Positions 3,839 through 50,005 of a DNA stretch of 64,000 bases are shown piece after piece. Origin of the DNA: Tubulanus polymorphus. Its lineage: Eukaryota > Animalia > Nemertea. Location: positions 11,892,275-11,956,274 of the forward strand of contig NC_134032.1 in assembly GCF_964204645.1 (NCBI RefSeq). The letters are read 5' to 3'. Position numbers and translations under genes: made by a program. Each line of letters begins with the position of its first letter. The stretch's first letter is position 1. Below the pieces are notes generated by a model. It had not been told where the DNA came from. It did no database searches and was given only the letters and a program-made list of their open reading frames with translations.

Positions 3839-4526
3839 TGTTTTCGATTTTCAAATACTTAGTGTGTATGGCTAGGACTTTGTGATGCGTGGCGAATGAT
3901 GACTAATGTCTAAGTCCCGCAATCAAAATACGATATGTCGATATTTTAACTTTATAAATTTACATAACTTGTGCGGATGAAAAATTCGCAGCAACAGTAT
4001 TCTAATAGTCAGATGTTTGCGTTTGCTTTCAATTTGTGGGAAAGGTTTTGAATATTTTATTTCGCCTGAACAGAAAACAATGTTTAAAACAATGAATCAT
4101 GTTCATGGTTTCTTTGTTTGCACTCTCAGCACAGACCGGTGGTGGTGAGACCGACCGTCGATTTTAGTTTTAACTATTTATCGTCGATCGTTAAATTTGA
4201 TTTATGATCCTATCGACTGGTTTTACGGCGCAATAAACACCGGGCTGTGATTTCATTATTAAAACTCTTTGTCTCACTCTCTCTGCCCTTCACTTTTTCC
4301 CTCGGTTTCCACATCTCTACCCGAGTCGCCAGTTTCTTAATGCCCTACGCTTAGAACACTGGGAAACACAGAAAGCGGAGATACAGAAGATACAGAAACA
4401 TGTCTAAGCGGTTCCCTGTATTGTGTGTGTTAACACCAAATGCGAAACATGGTTTCAGGGAGAAAAAATTTTTCCAAAATAAAACATGTTTGATTCTGGC
4501 ATTTCCCCGAGTTTCTCTGTCTCCCG

Positions 4527-4709
4527 CTCTCACTACCCCCTCTCACTACCCCCTCTCACTATCCCCTCTCACTATCCCCTCTCACTACCCCCTCTCACTA
4601 CCCCTTCTCACTATCCCCTCTCACTATCCCCTCTCACTACCCCCTCTCACTATCCCCTCTCACTATCCCCTCTCACTATCCCCTCTCACTATCCCCTCTC
4701 ACTATCCCT
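4527..4709. repeat. 13-bp minisatellite (CCCTCTCACTAYC)n, about 14 copies
   Basis: Tandem array read directly; it explains ORFs 4400..4789 and 4486..4809. Confidence 0.95.
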
Positions 4710-7319: not shown

Positions 7320-7935
7320 GGAAAATTTCACCAGTTTCAACTTAACCATAGGTGACAGAGTCTACTGTATTTCTCAAAATCTTACTCAGTATTTGACACC
7401 GACTCGGGGTAGAATTTTACCAGTTTCAACTTTACCACAGTAAGAGACAGAGTCTACTGTATTTCTCAAACTCTTACTCAGTATTTGACACCGACTCGGG
7501 GTAGAATTTTACCAGTTTCAACTTTACCACAGTAAGAGACAGAGTCTACTGTATTTCTCAAAATCTTACTTGGTATTTGACACCAACTTGGGGTAGAATT
7601 TTACCAGTTTCAACTTTACCACAGTAAGAGAGAGAGTCTACTGCATTTCTCAAAATCTTACACGGTATTTGACACCAACTTGGGGTAGAATTTTACCAGT
7701 TTCAACTTTACCACAGTAAGAGAGAGAGTCTACTGTATTTCTCAAACTCCTACTCAGTATTTGACACCGACTCGGGGTAGAATTTTACCAGTCTGAGCTG
7801 TACTGCAGTAAGAGACAGATTCCTACTGTATTTCTCAAAAATCTTACTCAGTATTTGACCCCGACGTGGGTAAAATTTAAACTCCCAACTTTACCACAGT
7901 AAGAAATAGAGTCAAGTGTATGTCTCAAACACTTA
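7320..7935 (+). repeat. 92-bp satellite array, about 6.5 copies
   Basis: gtagaattttacc recurs at 7409, 7501, 7593, 7685 and 7777 (period 92). The reverse-complement family lies at about 49335-50005. Confidence 0.95.
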
Positions 7936-8154
7936 TTCTTTGTTTGACAGATACAATAATAGTTTTTAATTTGATCAAGTAATGGTTGTAAGGTTGTTTA
8001 CCCAGCAATCAAAATCTAGGAAACGCTTCACTCTACAATTAGGATTAAAGAATTTAACTCTTCAGTGATTTGACCAAATACAAAAGTTGAATTAATTTTG
8101 CCATCTGAAATGTTGACAAACAACAAACCATTTCAGTGACTAATCCTGCCAAAT

Positions 8155-8495
8155 AAGCCACAGTAAACCATTTTTAGAGATTGCTTCTAAAAATCTGGGG
8201 AGAGTAAGATATTCTTGGAGCTGATACCTCACAATCCGGGGACAGTTAACTATTTTCAGGGATTGCTCCTGAAAATCAAGGCACAGTGAACCCTTTTCAG
8301 AGACTGCTTCTGACAATCAGGGGAAATCAAACTATTTTCAGAGACTGTTCTGAACAATAAGGGGATAGTAAACCATTTTCAGAGACTGTTCCTAACAATC
8401 GGGGCACAGTAAACTATTTCAGACATGGTTAACCATTTTCCTGATAATCAGTGGACATTAAACCTCTATACCCAGACACTGTTCCTGACAATCAG
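8155..8495 (+). repeat. Degenerate tandem repeat, about 45-46 bp unit (cagtaaaccattttcagagactgttcctgacaatc...)
   Basis: Recurring aaccattttcagaga / gacaatc motifs. Confidence 0.75.
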
Positions 8496-28028: not shown

Positions 28029-31000
28029 ATGGAGTCGTTGATGAAGAGTTTGTTTCTGGTCGCTGTATTTTCATACAATCTAGGTAAATCTCTAGGTGAG
28101 CGCGCAAAAAATATCAATATAAATGAAGAAATCCCACACTTCGAATTTAAAATTATACGATCAAATTTATCATTATGAAACTACAAAGTTTCGGCTGTTG
28201 ACTAACAGCCATCATCAGGTGGAATGATGATGGCTGTTAGTCAACAGCCGAAACGTTGTGGTTTCATAATAATAAATTTGATCGTATAATTTTAAATTCG
28301 AACGGTGGGATTTCTTCATTTATCTACAGTATACACGGATTATAGTGTTTATGCGACAACTAATATCAATATTACTTAACATTTTGTTGATTTAGATGAA
28401 TTTTAGGAAAACTTCCAAACGAAACTGTTCGATCAGTGCTGTCGCGCAGGTGCTGATCTGGGGAACTCTATATTGAAAAATTGTCTCAAACCGTGCAATT
28501 TTACCTCATTTAACAGCCAGTATGACGCGTTGTTCCGGGACCCTAGCTAGGAATTTTCAAAGACAGCTGTGTATATAAAAAAGGAATACATCTCTAAAAA
28601 GAAAATGAACTTCTTGAGCCTAACAACCAAAAACCTAGCTTCGAACCCGGGCCTTCCGGCGTATTAGTCGAGCATGCTAACCGCTAGACCGTCATGATCA
28701 TGGAATTTGTATGTGTGTCTGGTCAGTCTCGTGACTATTTAGCTGTGGTGACCAGTCAGGTGTGATGACTGGTGGCCAGTCAGGTGTGGTGACTGGTGAC
28801 CAGTCAGGTGTAGTGACTATTCACTAACAAATATCATTTCTCTGATTACAATAGTTTCTAATCAGAACCTATCATCAAGCTAATCAGACCCATTTCACAA
28901 GGCAATTATCAATTCCGTGTTAAGTAGCAGTTTTATATAAGTTCACAGATGCGGGTAAATCTTCAGTATTTACTTGTATACTACAGTATCGGGAGACGTT
29001 ATCGACTCGACCTGTAGTAGAACACCTAGAGTACAGAATGGCACATCGGGCATCATCACAAGCCCTAAACATCCGAACAACTACGATGATAACCTGGTCT
29101 GTTACTGGTTAATTCGTACGCCCGAATACACGGTAAATATACAAATATTTGTGAAATGTTGGTCTTAAAAATCATTTCGTCGGGTTTTCTTTACTAACTC
29201 GTAGGGCTAAGATAAGTTTTGATTTAAAACCAGGGGCCAGTTGCCAGTCGTGACCTAAGTCCAAAAGCGGTCTTAAATCTTAAGACTGGTCTTAAGTTGT
29301 TAGATTGGCTATAGAACTAATTTTCAACATTAAGTCTAAGCTATGACTATGCAACCGGCCCCTGGGTTTAGTTCAATTGATTATTCTGGGTTAAAGTTGA
29401 GAACGGATCTTTTCAAACGGGTCCTGAACTCTGTAACCAACACGATTTGCTCGCTTAAGAATTACAATTAGATTCTAAAAAACATACATTTTTTGCAGAT
29501 GGTTGAAATATCATTTTACTCGAATTTTCGTATAGAGTCCACGAGTAGAGGTGGTTGTTTCGACTCGATATCGATACAAACCGGAAAAGGTAAAAATCTA
29601 AACACTGTTCATCACGCGAATGATTTTATTTACGACTTTAGTCTTTTAAGATATATTTCTTCATCAGCGAGTATATCAAATATTGCGGTTTGACTGCTCC
29701 TGATGATGGATGTATTTTTACGGATCCAGCTAGAAATTCTTAATTGATTTGTGTGTTTATCTTTACAGCATTTGGTGCTGAATATTGCGGCAGTACAGCG
29801 CCTACTAAACGTTACTATTCCGGTTATTACGTGGGCATCCAGTTTGTATCAAATGGCGCTAAAAGCTATCGAGGGTTTAAACTTTATTGGCGGTTATTAA
29901 AAGGTAGCTTATATAGTGAGAAGTTGATCATAGAATTCACAGGATCATGGGATCACAGATTACATAAAAACAATTCTATATATCTATTTATAGTTGATTC
30001 ATCATGCAGTAAAACACCTATAATACAGAATGATACATCAGGCATCATCACGAGTGCAAATTATCCGGGCTACTATTTTAACAATTTGAACTGTAGCTGG
30101 TTGATTATAGCACCCGAAAATATGGTAAATGCGTGTGAGATGTTGGACTTAAAAAAAATGATGTTGTCGGTTTTCTGCACTATAGCGCAGGAGTTCATCT
30201 GACCTGTGTAAACTGATCCTGCACTCCCGTAGACAACGCGATTGTTCAGTTTTTGAATAATAATTCGATTCCTAAAATTTTTTGCAGATGGTTGAAATAT
30301 CATTTGACTCGCATTTTAGTATTGAGTCCACAGTACGCGGTAATTGCTCGGACGCGTTGACGATAAAAAGCGAAACCGGTAAAAATCGAAACTGTCTTCA
30401 CAACGATTTTCATGATTCAAATGGTTTTATCAGATTTATTCTTTTATCAGGGAGTAATCGATATTGTGGTGTGGCTGCTCCCCGCAAACGAGTCCACGCT
30501 GGAAATGTGACAATCCAGTTCACATCAGGCAAATATAGAAACAAAGCCGGGTTCAAACTGTTTTGGCAGTTTGTACAAATCAAAGGTGCTTAACAATAAA
30601 ATTTGTTGAAAATGAAATATATGAACTGAAGTCTTAAATTTGAAATTGTTGGGTATAGTTTAGTTTCATTATATACTATATTTCAGATTCATATACGAAC
30701 AGTGTTTGGCCAGCAGTTGGGATCGGTTTACTACTCGCAACAGGCGTTACCATATCTACCATCCTCGTGCTCAGACGCCGCAGGAACCTGAGAAACAGAA
30801 AATCTGGTTTGTTAGCTATCATTTTACCTGAAACGGGGAAGAGTGGAAGGGGTATAGGGCCCCATAATTGTGTCGAATAAGATTTGATAACGGCGGTGTA
30901 CTGAGTCTACCAGAATATAATTTGACCGATGATTTCGGGAACAGGGAGTTCTAGTTTGAATCAGTGATATCTTATCTCACGTTTATCTAATCATTGCATA

Positions 31001-31711
31001 GGTAACAACAAGACGACCGATCCCGGGGATTTTATCTACCTCCAGGTTTGTAAATATAAATACATTTCCATTGTTTTCAATTTTTGATTTGTGAATATTT
31101 TTGTACATTGTTTACCGAATTATTTTTAGCCTACACCCGTTGGTGGTGATGACAGAATTTACACTACTCAGGGTACTGTCTACGAAGACATAGAAGACGG
31201 AGAGGTCTACGATAATGTAAATATCGTAGATGTTGTTAATGTCGCTGATATCAGGAACGTTACAGAAGATGACTACATTGTCGCAGATGTCAGAAAACCT
31301 CCAGAAGATGAATACGTTTTCGCAGATGCCAAGAACCCTCCAGAAGATACCTACATCATCTCAAACCCTCCAGAAGTTACCTACGCTGTCGCAGATGCCA
31401 GGAACCCTCCAGAGGATGAGTATGTTTTCGCAGATGCCAGGAACCCTCCAGAAGATGAATACGTTTTTGCAGGTGTCAAGAACCCTCCAGAAGATGAGTA
31501 CGTTTTCGCAGATGCCAGGAACCCTCCAGAAGATGAGTACGTTTTCGCAGATGCCAGGAACGCTCCCGAAGATGAGTACGTTTTTGCAGGTGTCAAGAAC
31601 CCTTCAGAAGATGAGTACATTTTCGCAGATGTCAGGAACCTACCAGAAGATGATTACATTGTCGCAGGCTCTGATGTCCTCGCCCACCAGATCACTATGT
31701 CCCGTATATAG
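28029..31711 (+). CDS. Type I membrane protein: signal peptide, 2 CUB domains, TM, cytoplasmic tyrosine-repeat tail (509 aa model)
   Basis: Ten phase-consistent GT-AG exons: 28029-28083 (MESLMKSLFLVAVFSYNL), 28987-29132, 29499-29589, 29769-29903, 29994-30124, 30288-30378, 30451-30585, 30687-30806 (WPAVGIGLLLATGVTISTILVL-RRRR), 31002-31045 and 31130-31711. CUB motifs include SGIITSPKHPNNYDDNLVCYWLI, YCG, IQFVS..GFKLYW. Confidence 0.88.
28121..28361. mobile_element. Penelope-like retroelement remnant: inverted pseudo-LTR pair with hammerhead-like cores and 11-bp TSD
   Basis: About 100-bp near-perfect inverted arms at 28119-28323. CTGATGA-T-GGCTGTT-AGTC-AACAGCC-GAAAC is followed by aataaa in the plus arm. 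AATATCAATAT is directly repeated at 28110-28120 and 28362-28372. Confidence 0.75.
28633..28698 (-). pseudogene. tRNA-derived sequence (SINE head or tRNA pseudogene)
   Basis: Reverse strand reads gacggtctagcggttagcatgctcgactaatacgccggaaggcccgggttcgaagctagg: A-box-like and B-box-like motifs and an anticodon-loop-like CT-AAT-AC. The stems are broken. Confidence 0.6.
28730..28818 (+). repeat. About 24-bp tandem repeat (tggtgaccagtcaggtgtgRtgac), about 3 copies
   Basis: Read directly. Confidence 0.8.
31250..31670 (+). repeat. Coding 39-bp tandem repeat, 11 units, encoding (NPPEDEYVFADAR)-like peptides
   Basis: The GAAGAT-type unit start recurs at 31265, 31304, 31343, 31373 (one 30-bp unit), 31412, 31451, 31490, 31529, 31568, 31607 and 31646. 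Confidence 0.95.
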
Positions 31712-32756
31712 ATCTATTTTCATCGTGTAAATTATAAAGCATTTCTATATTGTATAAACTAACAATAACAAATAAAAGAGAAATATACTAACTTAAATAC
31801 CGAATTTGAATATAACAATTACAGTTGTTTTGTTCTATCTACTTTTTGTCGTTTTGGGGCCAATTGTCACTATATCAACTGTCCACCGGTTTACTTTAAC
31901 CATCAACTCCAGAGTCCGTGGTCTGACCAATGTTTGAGCACCTGGGCTATGGTTTTTGATGCACTGGGCACTGGCCAAGTCCATATTTGCCGCAATCGTG
32001 GGCGGTGCGTTTATTCATCTCTTATTCATGCGCTAAACACGTACATACTTACATTATAGTTCACTGAAAATCCGATAGATGGCGACAATCAATCTAAACC
32101 TTTTTAGACCATTAAGAGAATGTTTAAAATCTCCCGAAATCAAGATGAATATATCAACGAATTGAAAATATGTTACTCGTAAATTAGTTAATGAGTCAAC
32201 GTAATTATTCATCTAACGTGATTGAAATTATTCATGACTGTATACTTTAGTCATGGATCCCAAAATTACCCGATTGAGCTGGTATCAGCGAAATAACAGT
32301 CGTTTCCTAATAAGTGCAATAACGTTAGACAAATAATAACGTCGCCTAATTAATGAATTTACGAGTAATTTGAATATGTTTTGAATGGATAAAGGTATCT
32401 GAAACACTAGATACTTTCATTTCGGGAGGTTTTCCTCATTTACTTTTGTATTTAAAGGGTATCATTTCGATGTCTTATCCCCTCTGTTGGATTTCCAGTG
32501 ATGGAATTCATATAGATTTTTCGTATGAACTGCGACTCCTATTGATTAGGGTGCGAAACGGTTAGCCTAGTATTAGGTTCGGAAACGGCCTGTAAGCACT
32601 GATTTGGAGTGATATGGATAATGGACGGGTGTGCAAGGTTCGAATACGTTCTATGATAATGAAAATCGAGCATGACAATTCAATGGTGTACCCGTGATAG
32701 AAATAAAATCAAAGCAAAATTTATTTGATCCGTTTGATCGAATTACGAACAGTTGG

Positions 32757-49334: not shown

Positions 49335-50005
49335 GTAGAATTCTACCTCGGCTAGTTACATACTGAGTAAGGGTTGAGAGGGAGAGGGAGAGGGAGAGGG
49401 AGAGGGAGAGGGAGAGGGAGAGGGAGAGGGAGAGGGAGAGGGAGAGGGAGAGGGAGAGGGAGAGGGAGAGGGAGAGGGAGAGGGAGAGGGAGAGGGAGAG
49501 GGAGAGGGAGAGGGAGAGGGAGAGGGAGAGGGAGAGGGAGAGGGAGAGGGAGAGGGAGAGGGAGAGGGAGAGGGAGAGGGAGAGGGAGAGGGAGAGGGAG
49601 AGGGAGAGAGAGATGATAGACTTTGCGTGTCTCTTATTCGGTGGGGACTGGTAGAATTATACCTGAGTCGCTGTCAAATACTGAATAAGAGTAGAAATAC
49701 AGTAGACTCTGTCTTTTACTGCGGTCGAGTTGAGACCAGTAAAATTCTACCCCGAGTTGCTGTCAAATACTGAGTAAGAATTTGTGAAATACAGTAGACT
49801 CTGTCTCTTACTGCGGTCAAGTTGAGACAGGAGACTCACAAAGCGGTAAAGTTGAGACTGGTAAAATTCTACCTGAATTGGGGTCGAATAGTGAGTAAGA
49901 GTTTGAGAAATACAAACTCTGTCTTTTGGCAAAATTCTACCTCGACTTTGTTTCCAGTACTGAGTAAAACATCTGAGTAATACGAAAGACTCTGGAGTTT
50001 GAGAA
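49335..50005 (-). repeat. Diverged, inverted copies of the 92-bp satellite found at 7320-7935
   Basis: gtaaaattctaccccgagttgctgtcaaatactgagtaag...gaaatacagtagactctgtctcttactgcgg is the reverse complement of the 7.4-kb monomer. Confidence 0.85.
49376..49612 (+). repeat. Perfect (GAGAGG)n microsatellite, about 39 units
   Basis: Read directly. Confidence 0.98.

Follow-up and report, generated by a model that had tools for sequence, protein, structure and literature searches.

A nemertean tandem-CUB receptor gene with a tyrosine-motif repeat tail, a candidate docking platform for signalling proteins

The gene at positions 28029–31711 (+ strand) of the window, a 64,000-nucleotide stretch of the Tubulanus polymorphus genome, encodes a type I membrane protein with a tandem pair of extracellular CUB domains, a single transmembrane helix and a long acidic tail built around 11 tandem copies of a tyrosine-centred unit. 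The tail probably docks signalling proteins, and its motif content suggests that it is most likely a multivalent platform for SH2 proteins, for TRAF6, or for both. The full reading, given about an even chance, is that of a kinase-less type I receptor in which the CUB pair would bind an extracellular ligand and the disordered, strongly acidic tail would act as the docking platform. The gene is real and was present in RefSeq before this analysis, so the protein model is not new, but it is unstudied; it is an annotated and uncharacterised gene for which the proposed function is plausible.

Gene structure and domain organization

The gene comprises 10 exons and 9 introns, each intron beginning with GT and ending with AG, with the start ATG at 28029 and a TAG stop codon at 31709–31711. 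All exon translations are exact substrings of the 509-aa RefSeq protein XP_074656071.1 (P0002), labelled "uncharacterized". Exon 1 has two donors, at 28083 or 28095, and because the second lies 12 nt downstream of the first there are ten distinct junctions despite the 9 introns. Use of the longer exon 1 gives a match to the 513-aa RefSeq isoform X1 (P0046), labelled "neuropilin-1-like". The principal features are as follows.

28029..28083, + strand: exon 1, with the start codon and a signal-peptide-like N-terminus; isoform X1 uses the donor at 28095 and is 4 residues longer
28987..29903, + strand: CUB domain 1, on exons 28987-29132, 29499-29589 and 29769-29903; Pfam CUB, exon translations 26.1 + 18.0 bits
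29994..30585, + strand: CUB domain 2, on exons 29994-30124, 30288-30378 and 30451-30585; Pfam CUB, exon translations 24.7 + 13.2 bits
30687..30806, + strand: exon 8, with the single transmembrane helix followed by RRRRNLRNRK; hydropathy window 2.25
31002..31045, + strand: exon 9, a 44-nt juxtamembrane micro-exon (…DPGDFIYLQ) with one Tyr in a YLQP context; first exon of the tail cassette
31130..31711, + strand: exon 10, a cytoplasmic tail exon with 193 codons and the TAG stop, equal to residues 317-509 of XP_074656071.1
31151..31219, + strand: membrane-proximal multi-Tyr block, DRIYTTQ..VYEDI..VYDNV, conserved in paralogues
31250..31669, + strand: 11-unit array, every unit 39 bp long except one of 30 bp (31328-31357), with core [P/A/V/L]-x-E-D-x-Y-[V/I/A]
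31771..31776, + strand: AATAAA polyadenylation-type hexamer, read from the sequence 60 nt past the stop codon

The match of the exons to the RefSeq protein and the GT..AG introns uphold the gene model proposed in the initial annotation, and a type I topology holds as well. The splice-defined frame of exon 31130-31711 lacks an internal start ATG, as had been stated, and offers no ATG, GTG or TTG start until its last codons. The list of open reading frames therefore gives only two wrong frames over the array, and the description of the tail as hidden from the ORF track was correct. An ARAGORN scan found nothing, and a scan for bacterial promoters and terminators was set aside as irrelevant to a eukaryotic gene.

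Pfam detects two CUB domains (PF00431, 107.1 bits) in P0002, which belongs to the CUB domain superfamily; the exon-level matches of 26.1 and 24.7 bits exceed the gathering threshold of 21.4 bits. The same Pfam comparison finds no catalytic domain in the protein and no match in the tail. Hydropathy analysis of P0002 places a single hydrophobic helix near residues 270-291, followed by RRRR, and the CUB-CUB-transmembrane receptor without a catalytic domain that had been proposed is borne out. The nearest sequence matches of the CUB pair are cubilin (3kq4, 2.4e-30) and the neuropilin a1a2 domains (1e-19).

The cytoplasmic tail and its repeat array

The tail is 210 residues long and acidic (net charge -30), and is predicted to be disordered by charge-hydropathy analysis. 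Exon 10 contributes 14 Tyr, 48 Asp plus Glu and 13 Lys plus Arg, and exon 9 a further Tyr; the array supplies 11 of the resulting 15 tail tyrosines. Tandem Repeats Finder reports a 39-bp unit in 11.2 copies at 31242-31667 (score 467), and the splice-defined frame of exon 10 reads as 11 units of type NPPEDEYVFADAR. The 30-bp unit at 31328-31357 leaves the frame intact, and the repeat and unit tables agree with the 11 units, 15 tyrosines and in-frame shortened unit counted earlier. Ten of the array Tyr codons are TAC and one is TAT, and the repeat tyrosines lie in the contexts YVFA, YIVA, YIIS and YAVA. The central units are each other's closest relatives (92-95%), which points to local expansion with the core retained. 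Across the array, each of the three forward frames is open or close to open. The protein ends in …TMSRI.

The regularity of the units raises the question of whether the array folds as a beta-rich repeat domain, in which the Tyr and the following run of V, I, F or A would form a buried strand, NPPED would form a turn, and the conserved residues would be structural. In each unit a Pro-rich charged turn does follow a hydrophobic stretch of 6 residues, and single-sequence AlphaFold2 places a 4-7-residue strand on each unit. The confidence of these predictions is low, however: the best model of the tail alone reached a mean pLDDT of 47.7 (50-56 over the array) and the other four models 28-31, and in the model of the whole protein (mean pLDDT 32) the CUB domains themselves were not modelled. 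The net charge and predicted disorder also argue against a fold of this kind, and the mixture of 10-, 13- and 14-residue units would be poorly tolerated by a regular solenoid. Such a domain is the least probable of the alternatives considered here.

A family of genes sharing the tail

The window gene is one of at least 9 members of an undescribed family, so far seen only in Tubulanus polymorphus, which are located on chromosomes C8 (genes with multi-CUB ectodomains) and C2 (genes with discoidin-like plus FN3 ectodomains). The window gene and 8 C8/C2 loci share a cassette consisting of the micro-exon and the tail exon, with the DRIY[T/S]TQ..YEDI block and the E-D-x-Y-[V/I] array, and in 9 of 9 genes an intron of 79-89 nt separates the 44-nt micro-exon from a phase-0 tail exon. 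The occurrence of this two-exon cassette on two unrelated ectodomains is what would be expected of a self-contained signalling module. Repeat number differs among the genes, from about 9 to 32 units per gene, in agreement with the earlier suggestion of a Tyr-centred acidic array of varying copy number, as a difference between genes. Individual arrays mix units that are 10, 13 or 14 residues long. Alternative splicing within the array was considered, on the supposition that the repeats might contain donor- and acceptor-like sites, and was dropped, since paralogue P0003 has RefSeq isoforms that vary in the ectodomain and not in the tail.

When phmmer was run exhaustively against 1.84 billion representatives, it returned no strong match outside T. 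polymorphus. The weaker matches that were read (17 proteins, P0004, P0007 and P0011-P0025, including lungfish and Hyla sequences, together with P0009 and P0010) were rejected as unrelated proteins whose repeats have a period of about 13 residues; a further 20 (P0008, P0026-P0045; E 7.8e-20 to 9.4e-4) complete the list. Word-index searches of protein collections gave no match for the tail exon, only the protein itself for residues 262-509 of P0002, and no transcript-derived fragments. In a look-alike search of the ESM Atlas the best score was 0.79, under the tool's stated chance level.

Conservation and selection

When 141 units from the 9 genes are anchored on N-x-x-E-D rather than on Tyr, the Tyr is retained in 139 of them (131 TAC, 8 TAT), and the two losses are to Asp and to Phe. 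Position Tyr+1 is V or I in 137 of the 141 units, and positions -1 and +2 to +4 are variable. Glu outnumbers Asp at Tyr -3 by 87 to 3. Purifying selection acts on the proximal block in the tail frame only: comparison with paralogues gives pS 0.61 and pN 0.18 in the coding frame and in no other. The proximal-block pS/pN and the near-invariance of Tyr across 9 genes together show that the tail pattern exceeds chance.

Selection support for the tyrosines comes from the paralogues, not from the single array. The initial annotation had pointed to a Tyr kept in every unit, including one with a synonymous TAT codon; the counts are right, but pN/pS within the array is about 0.7 in each of the three frames and carries no information on selection, so the TAT argument is weak on its own. 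Even among paralogues, the near-invariance of Tyr in young repeats could in part reflect concerted evolution rather than selection.

The same observations bear on the possibility that the array is a tolerated coding minisatellite without a specific function, which stays in frame only because frameshifts would destroy a needed C-terminus or are selected out. A pN/pS of about 0.7 in every frame, forward frames that are all open or nearly so over the array, and a family known from one species only are consistent with this idea. It leaves unaccounted for a core that persists in 139 of 141 units, from 9 genes and three diverged unit types, beside positions that drift, as well as the retention of the cassette on two ectodomain classes and the purifying selection on the adjacent proximal block. 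A functionless array is accordingly rated as highly improbable, only marginally ahead of the beta-rich fold.

Conservation also separates the individual motifs of the tail. The family retains YEDI, YxxQ (as Y[T/S]TQ), YLQP or YQP, and the unit core E-D-x-Y-[V/I]; YEDI and Y[T/S]TQ are kept in both ectodomain classes and YD[N/D]V in the CUB class. The immunoreceptor tyrosine switch motif (ITSM, TxYxxI) that had been read in the tail does not survive this comparison, as TVYEDI occurs in the window gene only and the paralogue tails examined read GIYEDI or DVYEDI. A Grb2-type pYxN site at YDNV fares no better: C8 genes have YDDV and C2 genes are without that Tyr. The C2 genes carry 5 YVN[T/I] (Grb2-type) units each. 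A motif census of the tail found no ITAM, ITIM, PPxY or NPxY and a single YxxP (YLQP), and no ITAM, ITIM or ITSM is conserved in the family. Candidate FFAT-like (core VFADA), beta-arrestin-type ([DE]nFxxFxxxR) and LIR motifs, sought by eye, were rejected because they occur in only a window unit variant or fail at a key position; the paralogues conserve none of them.

Possible functions of the tail

A docking scaffold remains the most economical account of these data and is the part of the earlier signalling-scaffold proposal that stands; the ITSM and pYxN assignments do not, and the copy-number variation between individuals and the role in immunity or allorecognition suggested there are speculative. 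In this mechanism, clustering of the receptor by its ligand would bring the tail within reach of a cytosolic tyrosine kinase that prefers acidic residues, one of Src or Syk type. The kinase would phosphorylate the 11 tyrosines of the repeats (E-D-x-Y-[V/I]) together with four or five conserved proximal ones (YLQP, YTTQ, YEDI, YDNV), and the phosphosites would gather many SH2 adaptors and enzymes on one chain. The genome contains at least 36 SH2-domain exon matches. Peptide libraries of the Songyang type define pYEEI for Src, pYxN for Grb2, pYxxP for Crk and pY-hydrophobic-x-hydrophobic for SHP2 and PLC-gamma. The hydrophobic residues at +1 to +3 would best fit SH2 domains of the SHP2 or PLC-gamma class; the +3 residue of the units is mostly Ala, a poor fit to any textbook SH2 consensus.

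The tail might instead act without phosphorylation or TRAF6, either as an acidic disordered spacer or through sorting and endocytic signals (YxxPhi, acidic clusters) of a cubilin-like scavenger receptor. The kinship of the CUB pair to cubilin, an endocytic ligand binder, the high acidity of the tail, and the fit of YEDI, YDNV and some paralogue units (YVVV) to YxxPhi are compatible with such a role. The 11 window units (YVFA, YIVA, YIIS, YAVA) are not YxxPhi signals because their +3 residue is Ala or Ser, and sorting signals are normally not iterated 11 to 35 times. A spacer would leave unexplained the invariant Glu, Asp and Tyr beside variable neighbours. Sorting or spacing thus appears improbable, if less so than a functionless minisatellite.

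A stronger competitor, missed in the initial annotation, arises from the fit of each unit to the TRAF6 consensus PxExx(aromatic/acidic). TRAF6-binding sites have Pro or a small hydrophobic residue at P-2, Glu at P0, and an aromatic or acidic residue at P3 (PMC6125299), and TRAF6 site BS I of RANK is PTEDEY (PMC3309942). The window unit PPEDEY is one residue away from the RANK site, and paralogue units read PTEDDY and PTEDTY. By sequence pattern, the tail falls in the TRAF6-motif class (PxExxZ): it contains 8 matches to the strict PxExxY pattern and 11 to the relaxed one, where shuffling gives means of 0.2 and 0.8, and the ectodomain contains none. The repeat unit could then be primarily a TRAF6-binding motif rather than an SH2 site, the 11 units providing single-chain avidity for trimeric TRAF6 and innate signalling of the NF-kB/JNK type, with or without Tyr phosphorylation.

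Several observations are in line with this possibility. The strict preference for Glu over Asp (87:3) falls at P0 and looks more like specific recognition of an unphosphorylated peptide, for example by TRAF6, than like a general acid preference of kinases, and both Tyr losses among the 141 units (Asp, Phe) are allowed at P3. The genome has a TRAF6-type MATH exon (C11:4076033-4076383) whose best PDB match is human TRAF6, at 101.9 bits versus 73.6 for TRAF1/2, and which retains the pocket residues at the positions of R392, A458, F471 and Y473, with Arg in place of K469. A TRAF6_Z2 match at C2:22532734 was rejected as TRAF6, the MATH exon of that gene being closest to TRAF3. TRAF6 has also been reported, in the introduction of PMC6029619, to bind DCBLD2 through a phosphorylated PxExxY motif. 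Against these points, a shuffled unit carries the strict motif 6% and the relaxed motif 15% of the time, and the matches count as one event because the array derives from one ancestral unit. Position P-2 is Thr or Ser in about 26% of family units, and TRAF6 binding, which uses P-4 to P3, leaves unexplained the V or I at Tyr+1 and the conserved proximal tyrosines. A primarily TRAF6-directed unit is a possibility to be taken seriously, though we consider it doubtful. Within the docking mechanism, TRAF6 may also be recruited alongside SH2 proteins, since each unit doubles as a PxExxY site.

Comparison with known receptors

The statement that no family with this architecture had been described needs correction: the exact protein is in RefSeq, and DCBLD1/2 (PMC6029619) and CDCP1 are kinase-less CUB receptors with Tyr-motif scaffold tails. 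These are the closest analogues. DCBLD1 and DCBLD2 (ESDN) are, like the window protein, type I and kinase-less with an extracellular CUB domain; their disordered tails carry 7-8 iterated Tyr motifs that bind the SH2 adaptor CRKL after phosphorylation by Src-family (Fyn) or Abl-family kinases (PMC6029619), and the PxExxY motif reported for DCBLD2 in that source is a further likeness to the window unit. The window protein lies outside this family, as it has no match to the LCCL and discoidin domains that accompany CUB in DCBLD1/2 and its tail has E-D-x-Y-[V/I] units and one YxxP where theirs have 7-8 YxxP. The tails are not homologous, and a true 39-bp tandem array contrasts with dispersed sites.

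CDCP1 (Trask), a Src substrate, is likewise type I and kinase-less, and combines CUB-like ectodomains with a Tyr-phosphorylated docking tail. It has five scattered tyrosines in place of an array, and P0002 has no match to the CDCP1-type CUB families PF23665 and PF23668; a partial match is found only on paralogue P0003, under a stronger generic CUB match.

Other CUB proteins are more distant. The tandem CUB pair aligns to a1a2 of neuropilin-1/2 (E about 1e-19), but there is no match to the b1/b2 discoidin (FA58C) or MAM domains of the neuropilin architecture (CUB x2, FA58C x2, MAM), and the neuropilin tail is short and ends in SEA, whereas the 210-residue Tyr array tail ends in SRI. NETO1/2 have LDLa between two CUB domains and the membrane, for which no match was found, and the NETO2 match is weak (1.4e-4). 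Cubilin is the best match at the CUB level only; it is secreted or peripheral, with EGF repeats, 27 CUB domains and no transmembrane helix, unlike the two CUB domains and one helix found here.

In its tail motif, PPEDEY versus PTEDEY within PxExx(aromatic/acidic), the protein resembles TRAF6-recruiting receptors of the RANK/CD40 type (PMC3309942, PMC6125299). RANK has a TNFR cysteine-rich ectodomain and three dispersed sites, in contrast to CUB domains and 11 tandem candidate sites. Iterated Tyr motifs in disordered regions are likewise found in nephrin (3 YDxV), p130Cas (15 YxxP), LAT and bacterial EPIYA effectors. Nephrin YDxV motifs recruit Nck (PMC11247170, PMC6857567), and multivalent phosphotyrosine scaffolds support valency-driven adaptor clustering (PMC6857567, PMC9333988). 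The window gene has one nephrin-type motif (YDNV); it shares no homology with these proteins, its unit sequence is different, and its tail is an exon-level cassette common to two receptor classes in one species.

Significance

If the tail truly docks signalling proteins, the family would be a case in which a coding minisatellite encodes signalling valency and a two-exon cassette carries it from one ectodomain to another, unrelated one. Two well-studied codes overlap in the unit, the acidic tyrosine-kinase/SH2 site and the TRAF6 PxExxY motif, and the idea is therefore directly testable with peptides and recombinant domains. A more elaborate view, tentative and somewhat less probable than a primarily TRAF6-directed unit, combines the two: a nemertean-specific exon-shuffled cassette whose minisatellite unit would be a dual TRAF6 (PxExxY) and phosphotyrosine/SH2 code in innate-immune-type receptors. 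Joined to CUB arrays or to discoidin-like plus FN3 ectodomains, the cassette would let repeat number fix the signalling valency, at about 9 to 32 units, and a single chain could nucleate a lattice of TRAF6 or SH2 adaptors. More generally, this family could show how Nemertea, a little-studied phylum, build kinase-less receptors, possibly for innate immunity.

Gene structure and annotation

The window (chromosome C8, C8:11,892,275-11,956,274) belongs to a 268-Mb assembly of 77 contigs, and the proteins it encodes are in RefSeq under Tubulanus polymorphus, a palaeonemertean ribbon worm. Reading of the sequence between 27,800 and 31,900 places ten exons on the + strand, with GT..AG boundaries in all nine introns and exon phases that agree. 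An AATAAA hexamer lies downstream of the last exon, at 31771.

Exons of the window gene (positions in the window)
28029-28083, + strand, exon 1, with a second donor at 28095
28987-29132, 29499-29589, 29769-29903, 29994-30124, 30288-30378 and 30451-30585, + strand, exons 2-7
30687-30806, + strand, exon 8
31002-31045, + strand, exon 9
31130-31711, + strand, exon 10, ending in the stop codon TAG at 31709-31711

Domains were searched exon by exon, and whole-protein analyses were done on the database record P0002. The tail exon (exon 10), used as query in an exhaustive phmmer search, retrieved this record, XP_074656071.1, 'uncharacterized protein LOC141909528 isoform X2' (509 aa), which contains each exon translation as an exact substring. 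The 509-aa model put forward in the initial annotation is therefore correct, and it is the existing RefSeq annotation rather than a new gene model; the observation of a CUB-CUB-TM receptor with an acidic tyrosine-repeat tail is likewise confirmed. Isoform X1 (P0046, 513 aa), named 'neuropilin-1-like', is made with the 28095 donor. The gene had been described as hidden from the ORF track, which is true of a bacterial-style ORF list, where two wrong frames cover the array, but not otherwise, since RefSeq annotates it.

Ectodomain, topology and intronic elements

Exons 2, 4, 5 and 7, taken singly, match the Pfam CUB model with 26.1, 18.0, 24.7 and 13.2 bits, and the Pfam search of P0002 gives two CUB domains (107 bits), no other domain and no match in the tail. 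The nearest sequences to the CUB pair are cubilin CUB5-8 (2.4e-30) and the neuropilin a1a2 pair (about 1e-19). A signal-peptide-like N-terminus and a single hydrophobic helix (about residues 270-291 of P0002, hydropathy 2.25), followed by RRRRNLRNRK, predict a type I membrane protein with its tail in the cytoplasm.

Intron 6 (30379-30450) is 72 nt long, in frame and stop-free, and an ORF at 30282-30593 runs across it. If translated, the starts of intron 6 and intron 3 (29590-29650) would give the peptide GKN(L/R)N…NDF. Of the RefSeq isoforms of P0003, the protein of a paralogue, X1 and X2 contain this peptide and X3 and X4 lack it, a pattern suggesting that the CUB module has a conserved alternative donor. 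Intron 1 holds a near-perfect inverted repeat (28119-28323; 99-nt arms, 95% complementary, 7-nt spacer) and a tandem repeat of 24 bp x 3 (28746-28818), upstream of which a tRNA-like stretch at about 28620-28700, without an ARAGORN call, may be a SINE remnant. Intron 2 carries a MITE-like element (29219-29376), whose terminal inverted repeats of 26 nt match at 85% complementarity and lie 106 nt apart. Elsewhere in the window, tandem repeats at 4522-4708, 7324-7929, 8126-8423, 49376-49613 and 49651-49828 comprise 13 bp x 14, 92 bp x 6.6, 41/82-bp and (GAGAGG) x 40 arrays; a 92-bp x 2 copy near 49.7 kb, in opposite orientation, looks related to the 92 bp x 6.6 repeat.

A cytoplasmic cassette shared by two receptor classes

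When the tail exon was searched against the genome in six frames, the same tail was identified at five further loci on C8, at 14.87, 15.10, 15.56, 15.87 and 16.28 Mb, and at three tandem loci on chromosome C2 at 4.37-4.39 Mb. In the C8 paralogues, one of which is named 'cubilin-like' in RefSeq, CUB domains number from three to at least six and are assembled from the three-exon CUB module that the window gene also uses; the 20 to 32 units of their tails are distributed over two or three copies of the tail exon. In the C2 genes (C2:4366500-4394500) a discoidin-like domain is combined with three to five FN3 domains, together with a TM helix and the shared tail; Pfam detects no phosphatase domain in them, and their RefSeq names, 'LAR-like' and 'PTP delta-like', are misleading. 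The window gene, with two CUB domains and 11 units, is the smallest member, 3 Mb away from the main cluster. Common to all nine genes are a 44-nt juxtamembrane micro-exon, an intron of 79-89 nt and a phase-0 tail exon opening DRIY[T/S]TQ..YEDI, so that the cytoplasmic part is a two-exon cassette combined with two unrelated ectodomains.

Among the phmmer matches that were read, all but 20 of the weaker ones, no homologue beyond T. polymorphus was found, the weak matches being unrelated periodic-repeat proteins; two word-index searches and the ESM Atlas also gave none. A weak match to the repeat region at C10:11000585-11000974 on chromosome C10 (31% identity, E 3e-4), within an 827-codon open frame, is probably another acidic repeat protein.

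Composition and evolution of the repeat array

Proline makes up 9% and tyrosine 7% of the window-gene tail, whose net charge is -30; by its charge and hydropathy it plots with disordered sequences. That it is simply a sorting signal or acidic spacer is unlikely. Fourteen tyrosines are in exon 10 and one is in exon 9. TRF finds 11.2 copies of a 39-bp unit at 31242-31667 (score 467). In the splice-defined frame, the array reads IRNVTEDDYIVAD, VRKPPEDEYVFAD, AKNPPEDTYI (30 bp) and ISNPPEVTYAVAD, followed by six near-identical units, (A/V)(R/K)N(P/A)(P/S)EDEY(V/I)FA(D/G), and by VRNLPEDDYIVAG; the repeat Tyr codons are TAC ten times and TAT once. AlphaFold2 places a short strand on each unit, as a folded beta-rich repeat would have it, but does so in only one of five models and with pLDDT of at most 56, and such a fold is very improbable.

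Between units of the array, pN/pS is about 0.7 whichever of the three frames is used, so the array by itself is no proof of selection; a tolerated minisatellite is a quite improbable account of it. In the proximal block, the multi-Tyr stretch near the membrane, 33 codons compared with the paralogues give pS 0.61 and pN 0.18 in the coding frame, a figure that represents few independent comparisons because four of the C8 copies are identical there; in the two non-coding frames pN equals or exceeds pS. When units of the nine genes are anchored on N-x-x-E-D, Tyr stands two residues on in 139 of 141 (131 TAC, 8 TAT), the two others having Asp and Phe. The residue after Tyr is Val or Ile in 137 of the 141; variation is seen at -1 and from +2 to +4. 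Among Tyr-anchored units, Glu outnumbers Asp at -3 by 87:3, and Asp occupies -2 in 86 of 90.

Unit types differ by lineage: the window gene has PPEDEYVFADAR, the C8 cluster has PPEDTYIVAGVR and PPEDDYVGPDVM, and the C2 genes have PTEDDYVNTNIRKATEDTYVVADVM, a double unit of 26 residues. The central units of the window-gene array are nearest to one another (92-95%). Together, these patterns point to local expansion and homogenisation of arrays with retention of a core [P]-x-E-D-x-Y-[V/I].

Candidate docking motifs

Two specific motif assignments in the initial annotation do not extend to the family: TVYEDI, taken as an ITSM, is confined to the window gene (paralogues have GIYEDI or DVYEDI), and YDNV, taken as a Grb2-type YxN site, is YDDV or missing in paralogues. 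Kept across both ectodomain classes are YLQP or YQP(P/S) in the micro-exon, Y[T/S]TQ and YEDI, while YD[N/D]V is kept in the CUB class. YEDI resembles the Src-SH2 motif pYEEI, and YVN[T/I], present as five units per C2 gene, is a classic Grb2 pYxN context. YD[N/D]V fits the nephrin/Nck-type motif YDxV (PMC11247170). A motif census of the tails contained no ITAM, ITIM, NPxY or PPxY; SH2 exon matches in the genome number at least 36. The chance that the tail docks SH2 proteins through phosphotyrosine is about even. The window-gene C-terminus, …TMSRI (31694-31708), ends in S-R-I, which fits the class I PDZ-ligand pattern; paralogues end in …GTMD, …GTVD or …NYKR, so this ending is no family feature.

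The array might instead mainly bind TRAF6, a possible but doubtful reading. The TRAF6 consensus is PxExxZ (Z aromatic or acidic), in which P-2, P0 and P3 contribute most to binding and small hydrophobics can replace Pro at P-2 (PMC6125299); RANK site BS I is PTEDEY (PMC3309942), and TRAF6 is reported to bind DCBLD2 via a phosphorylated PxExxY motif (PMC6029619). The window unit is PPEDEY, and paralogue units are PTEDDY, PTEDTY and ATEDTY. Eight window-gene units fit PxExxY strictly, and all 11 do if V, A or L is allowed at P-2 (means of 0.2 and 0.8 in shuffled tails); the ectodomain has no PxExxY. TRAF6 binding would account for the strict Glu at -3, for Pro at -5 and, weakly (n=2), for Asp and Phe as the sole replacements of Tyr. 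The genome also has a TRAF6-type MATH exon (chromosome C11, C11:4076033-4076383), which among PDB entries matches human TRAF6 best (101.9 bits vs 73.6 for TRAF1/2). Its peptide-pocket residues are conserved at the positions of R392, A458, F471 and Y473, with Arg in place of K469. A second TRAF gene (C2:22532734-22534648) matches the TRAF6_Z2 zinc-finger model, with a MATH exon closest to TRAF3. However, the whole array goes back to a single unit, which makes the PxExxY match one event, and a shuffled unit yields the strict motif 6% of the time. Furthermore, P-2 is Thr or Ser in roughly a quarter of the family's units, and the conserved V/I at +1 and the proximal tyrosines are left unexplained. 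SH2 and TRAF6 docking are compatible, as DCBLD2 illustrates.

Relationship to known receptors

The best reading is a kinase-less CUB receptor with a putative multivalent, Tyr-centred docking tail. The initial annotation knew of no described family with this architecture; precedents exist in DCBLD1/2 and CDCP1, which are CUB-bearing scaffold receptors, but the window gene lacks the domain make-up required of DCBLD, neuropilin, NETO, CDCP1 or cubilin, and its tail is homologous to none of theirs. VNTR tuning between individuals and a link to immunity or allorecognition, also proposed there, are unsupported. We class the group as a species-restricted family with a shuffled, minisatellite-encoded putative docking cassette.
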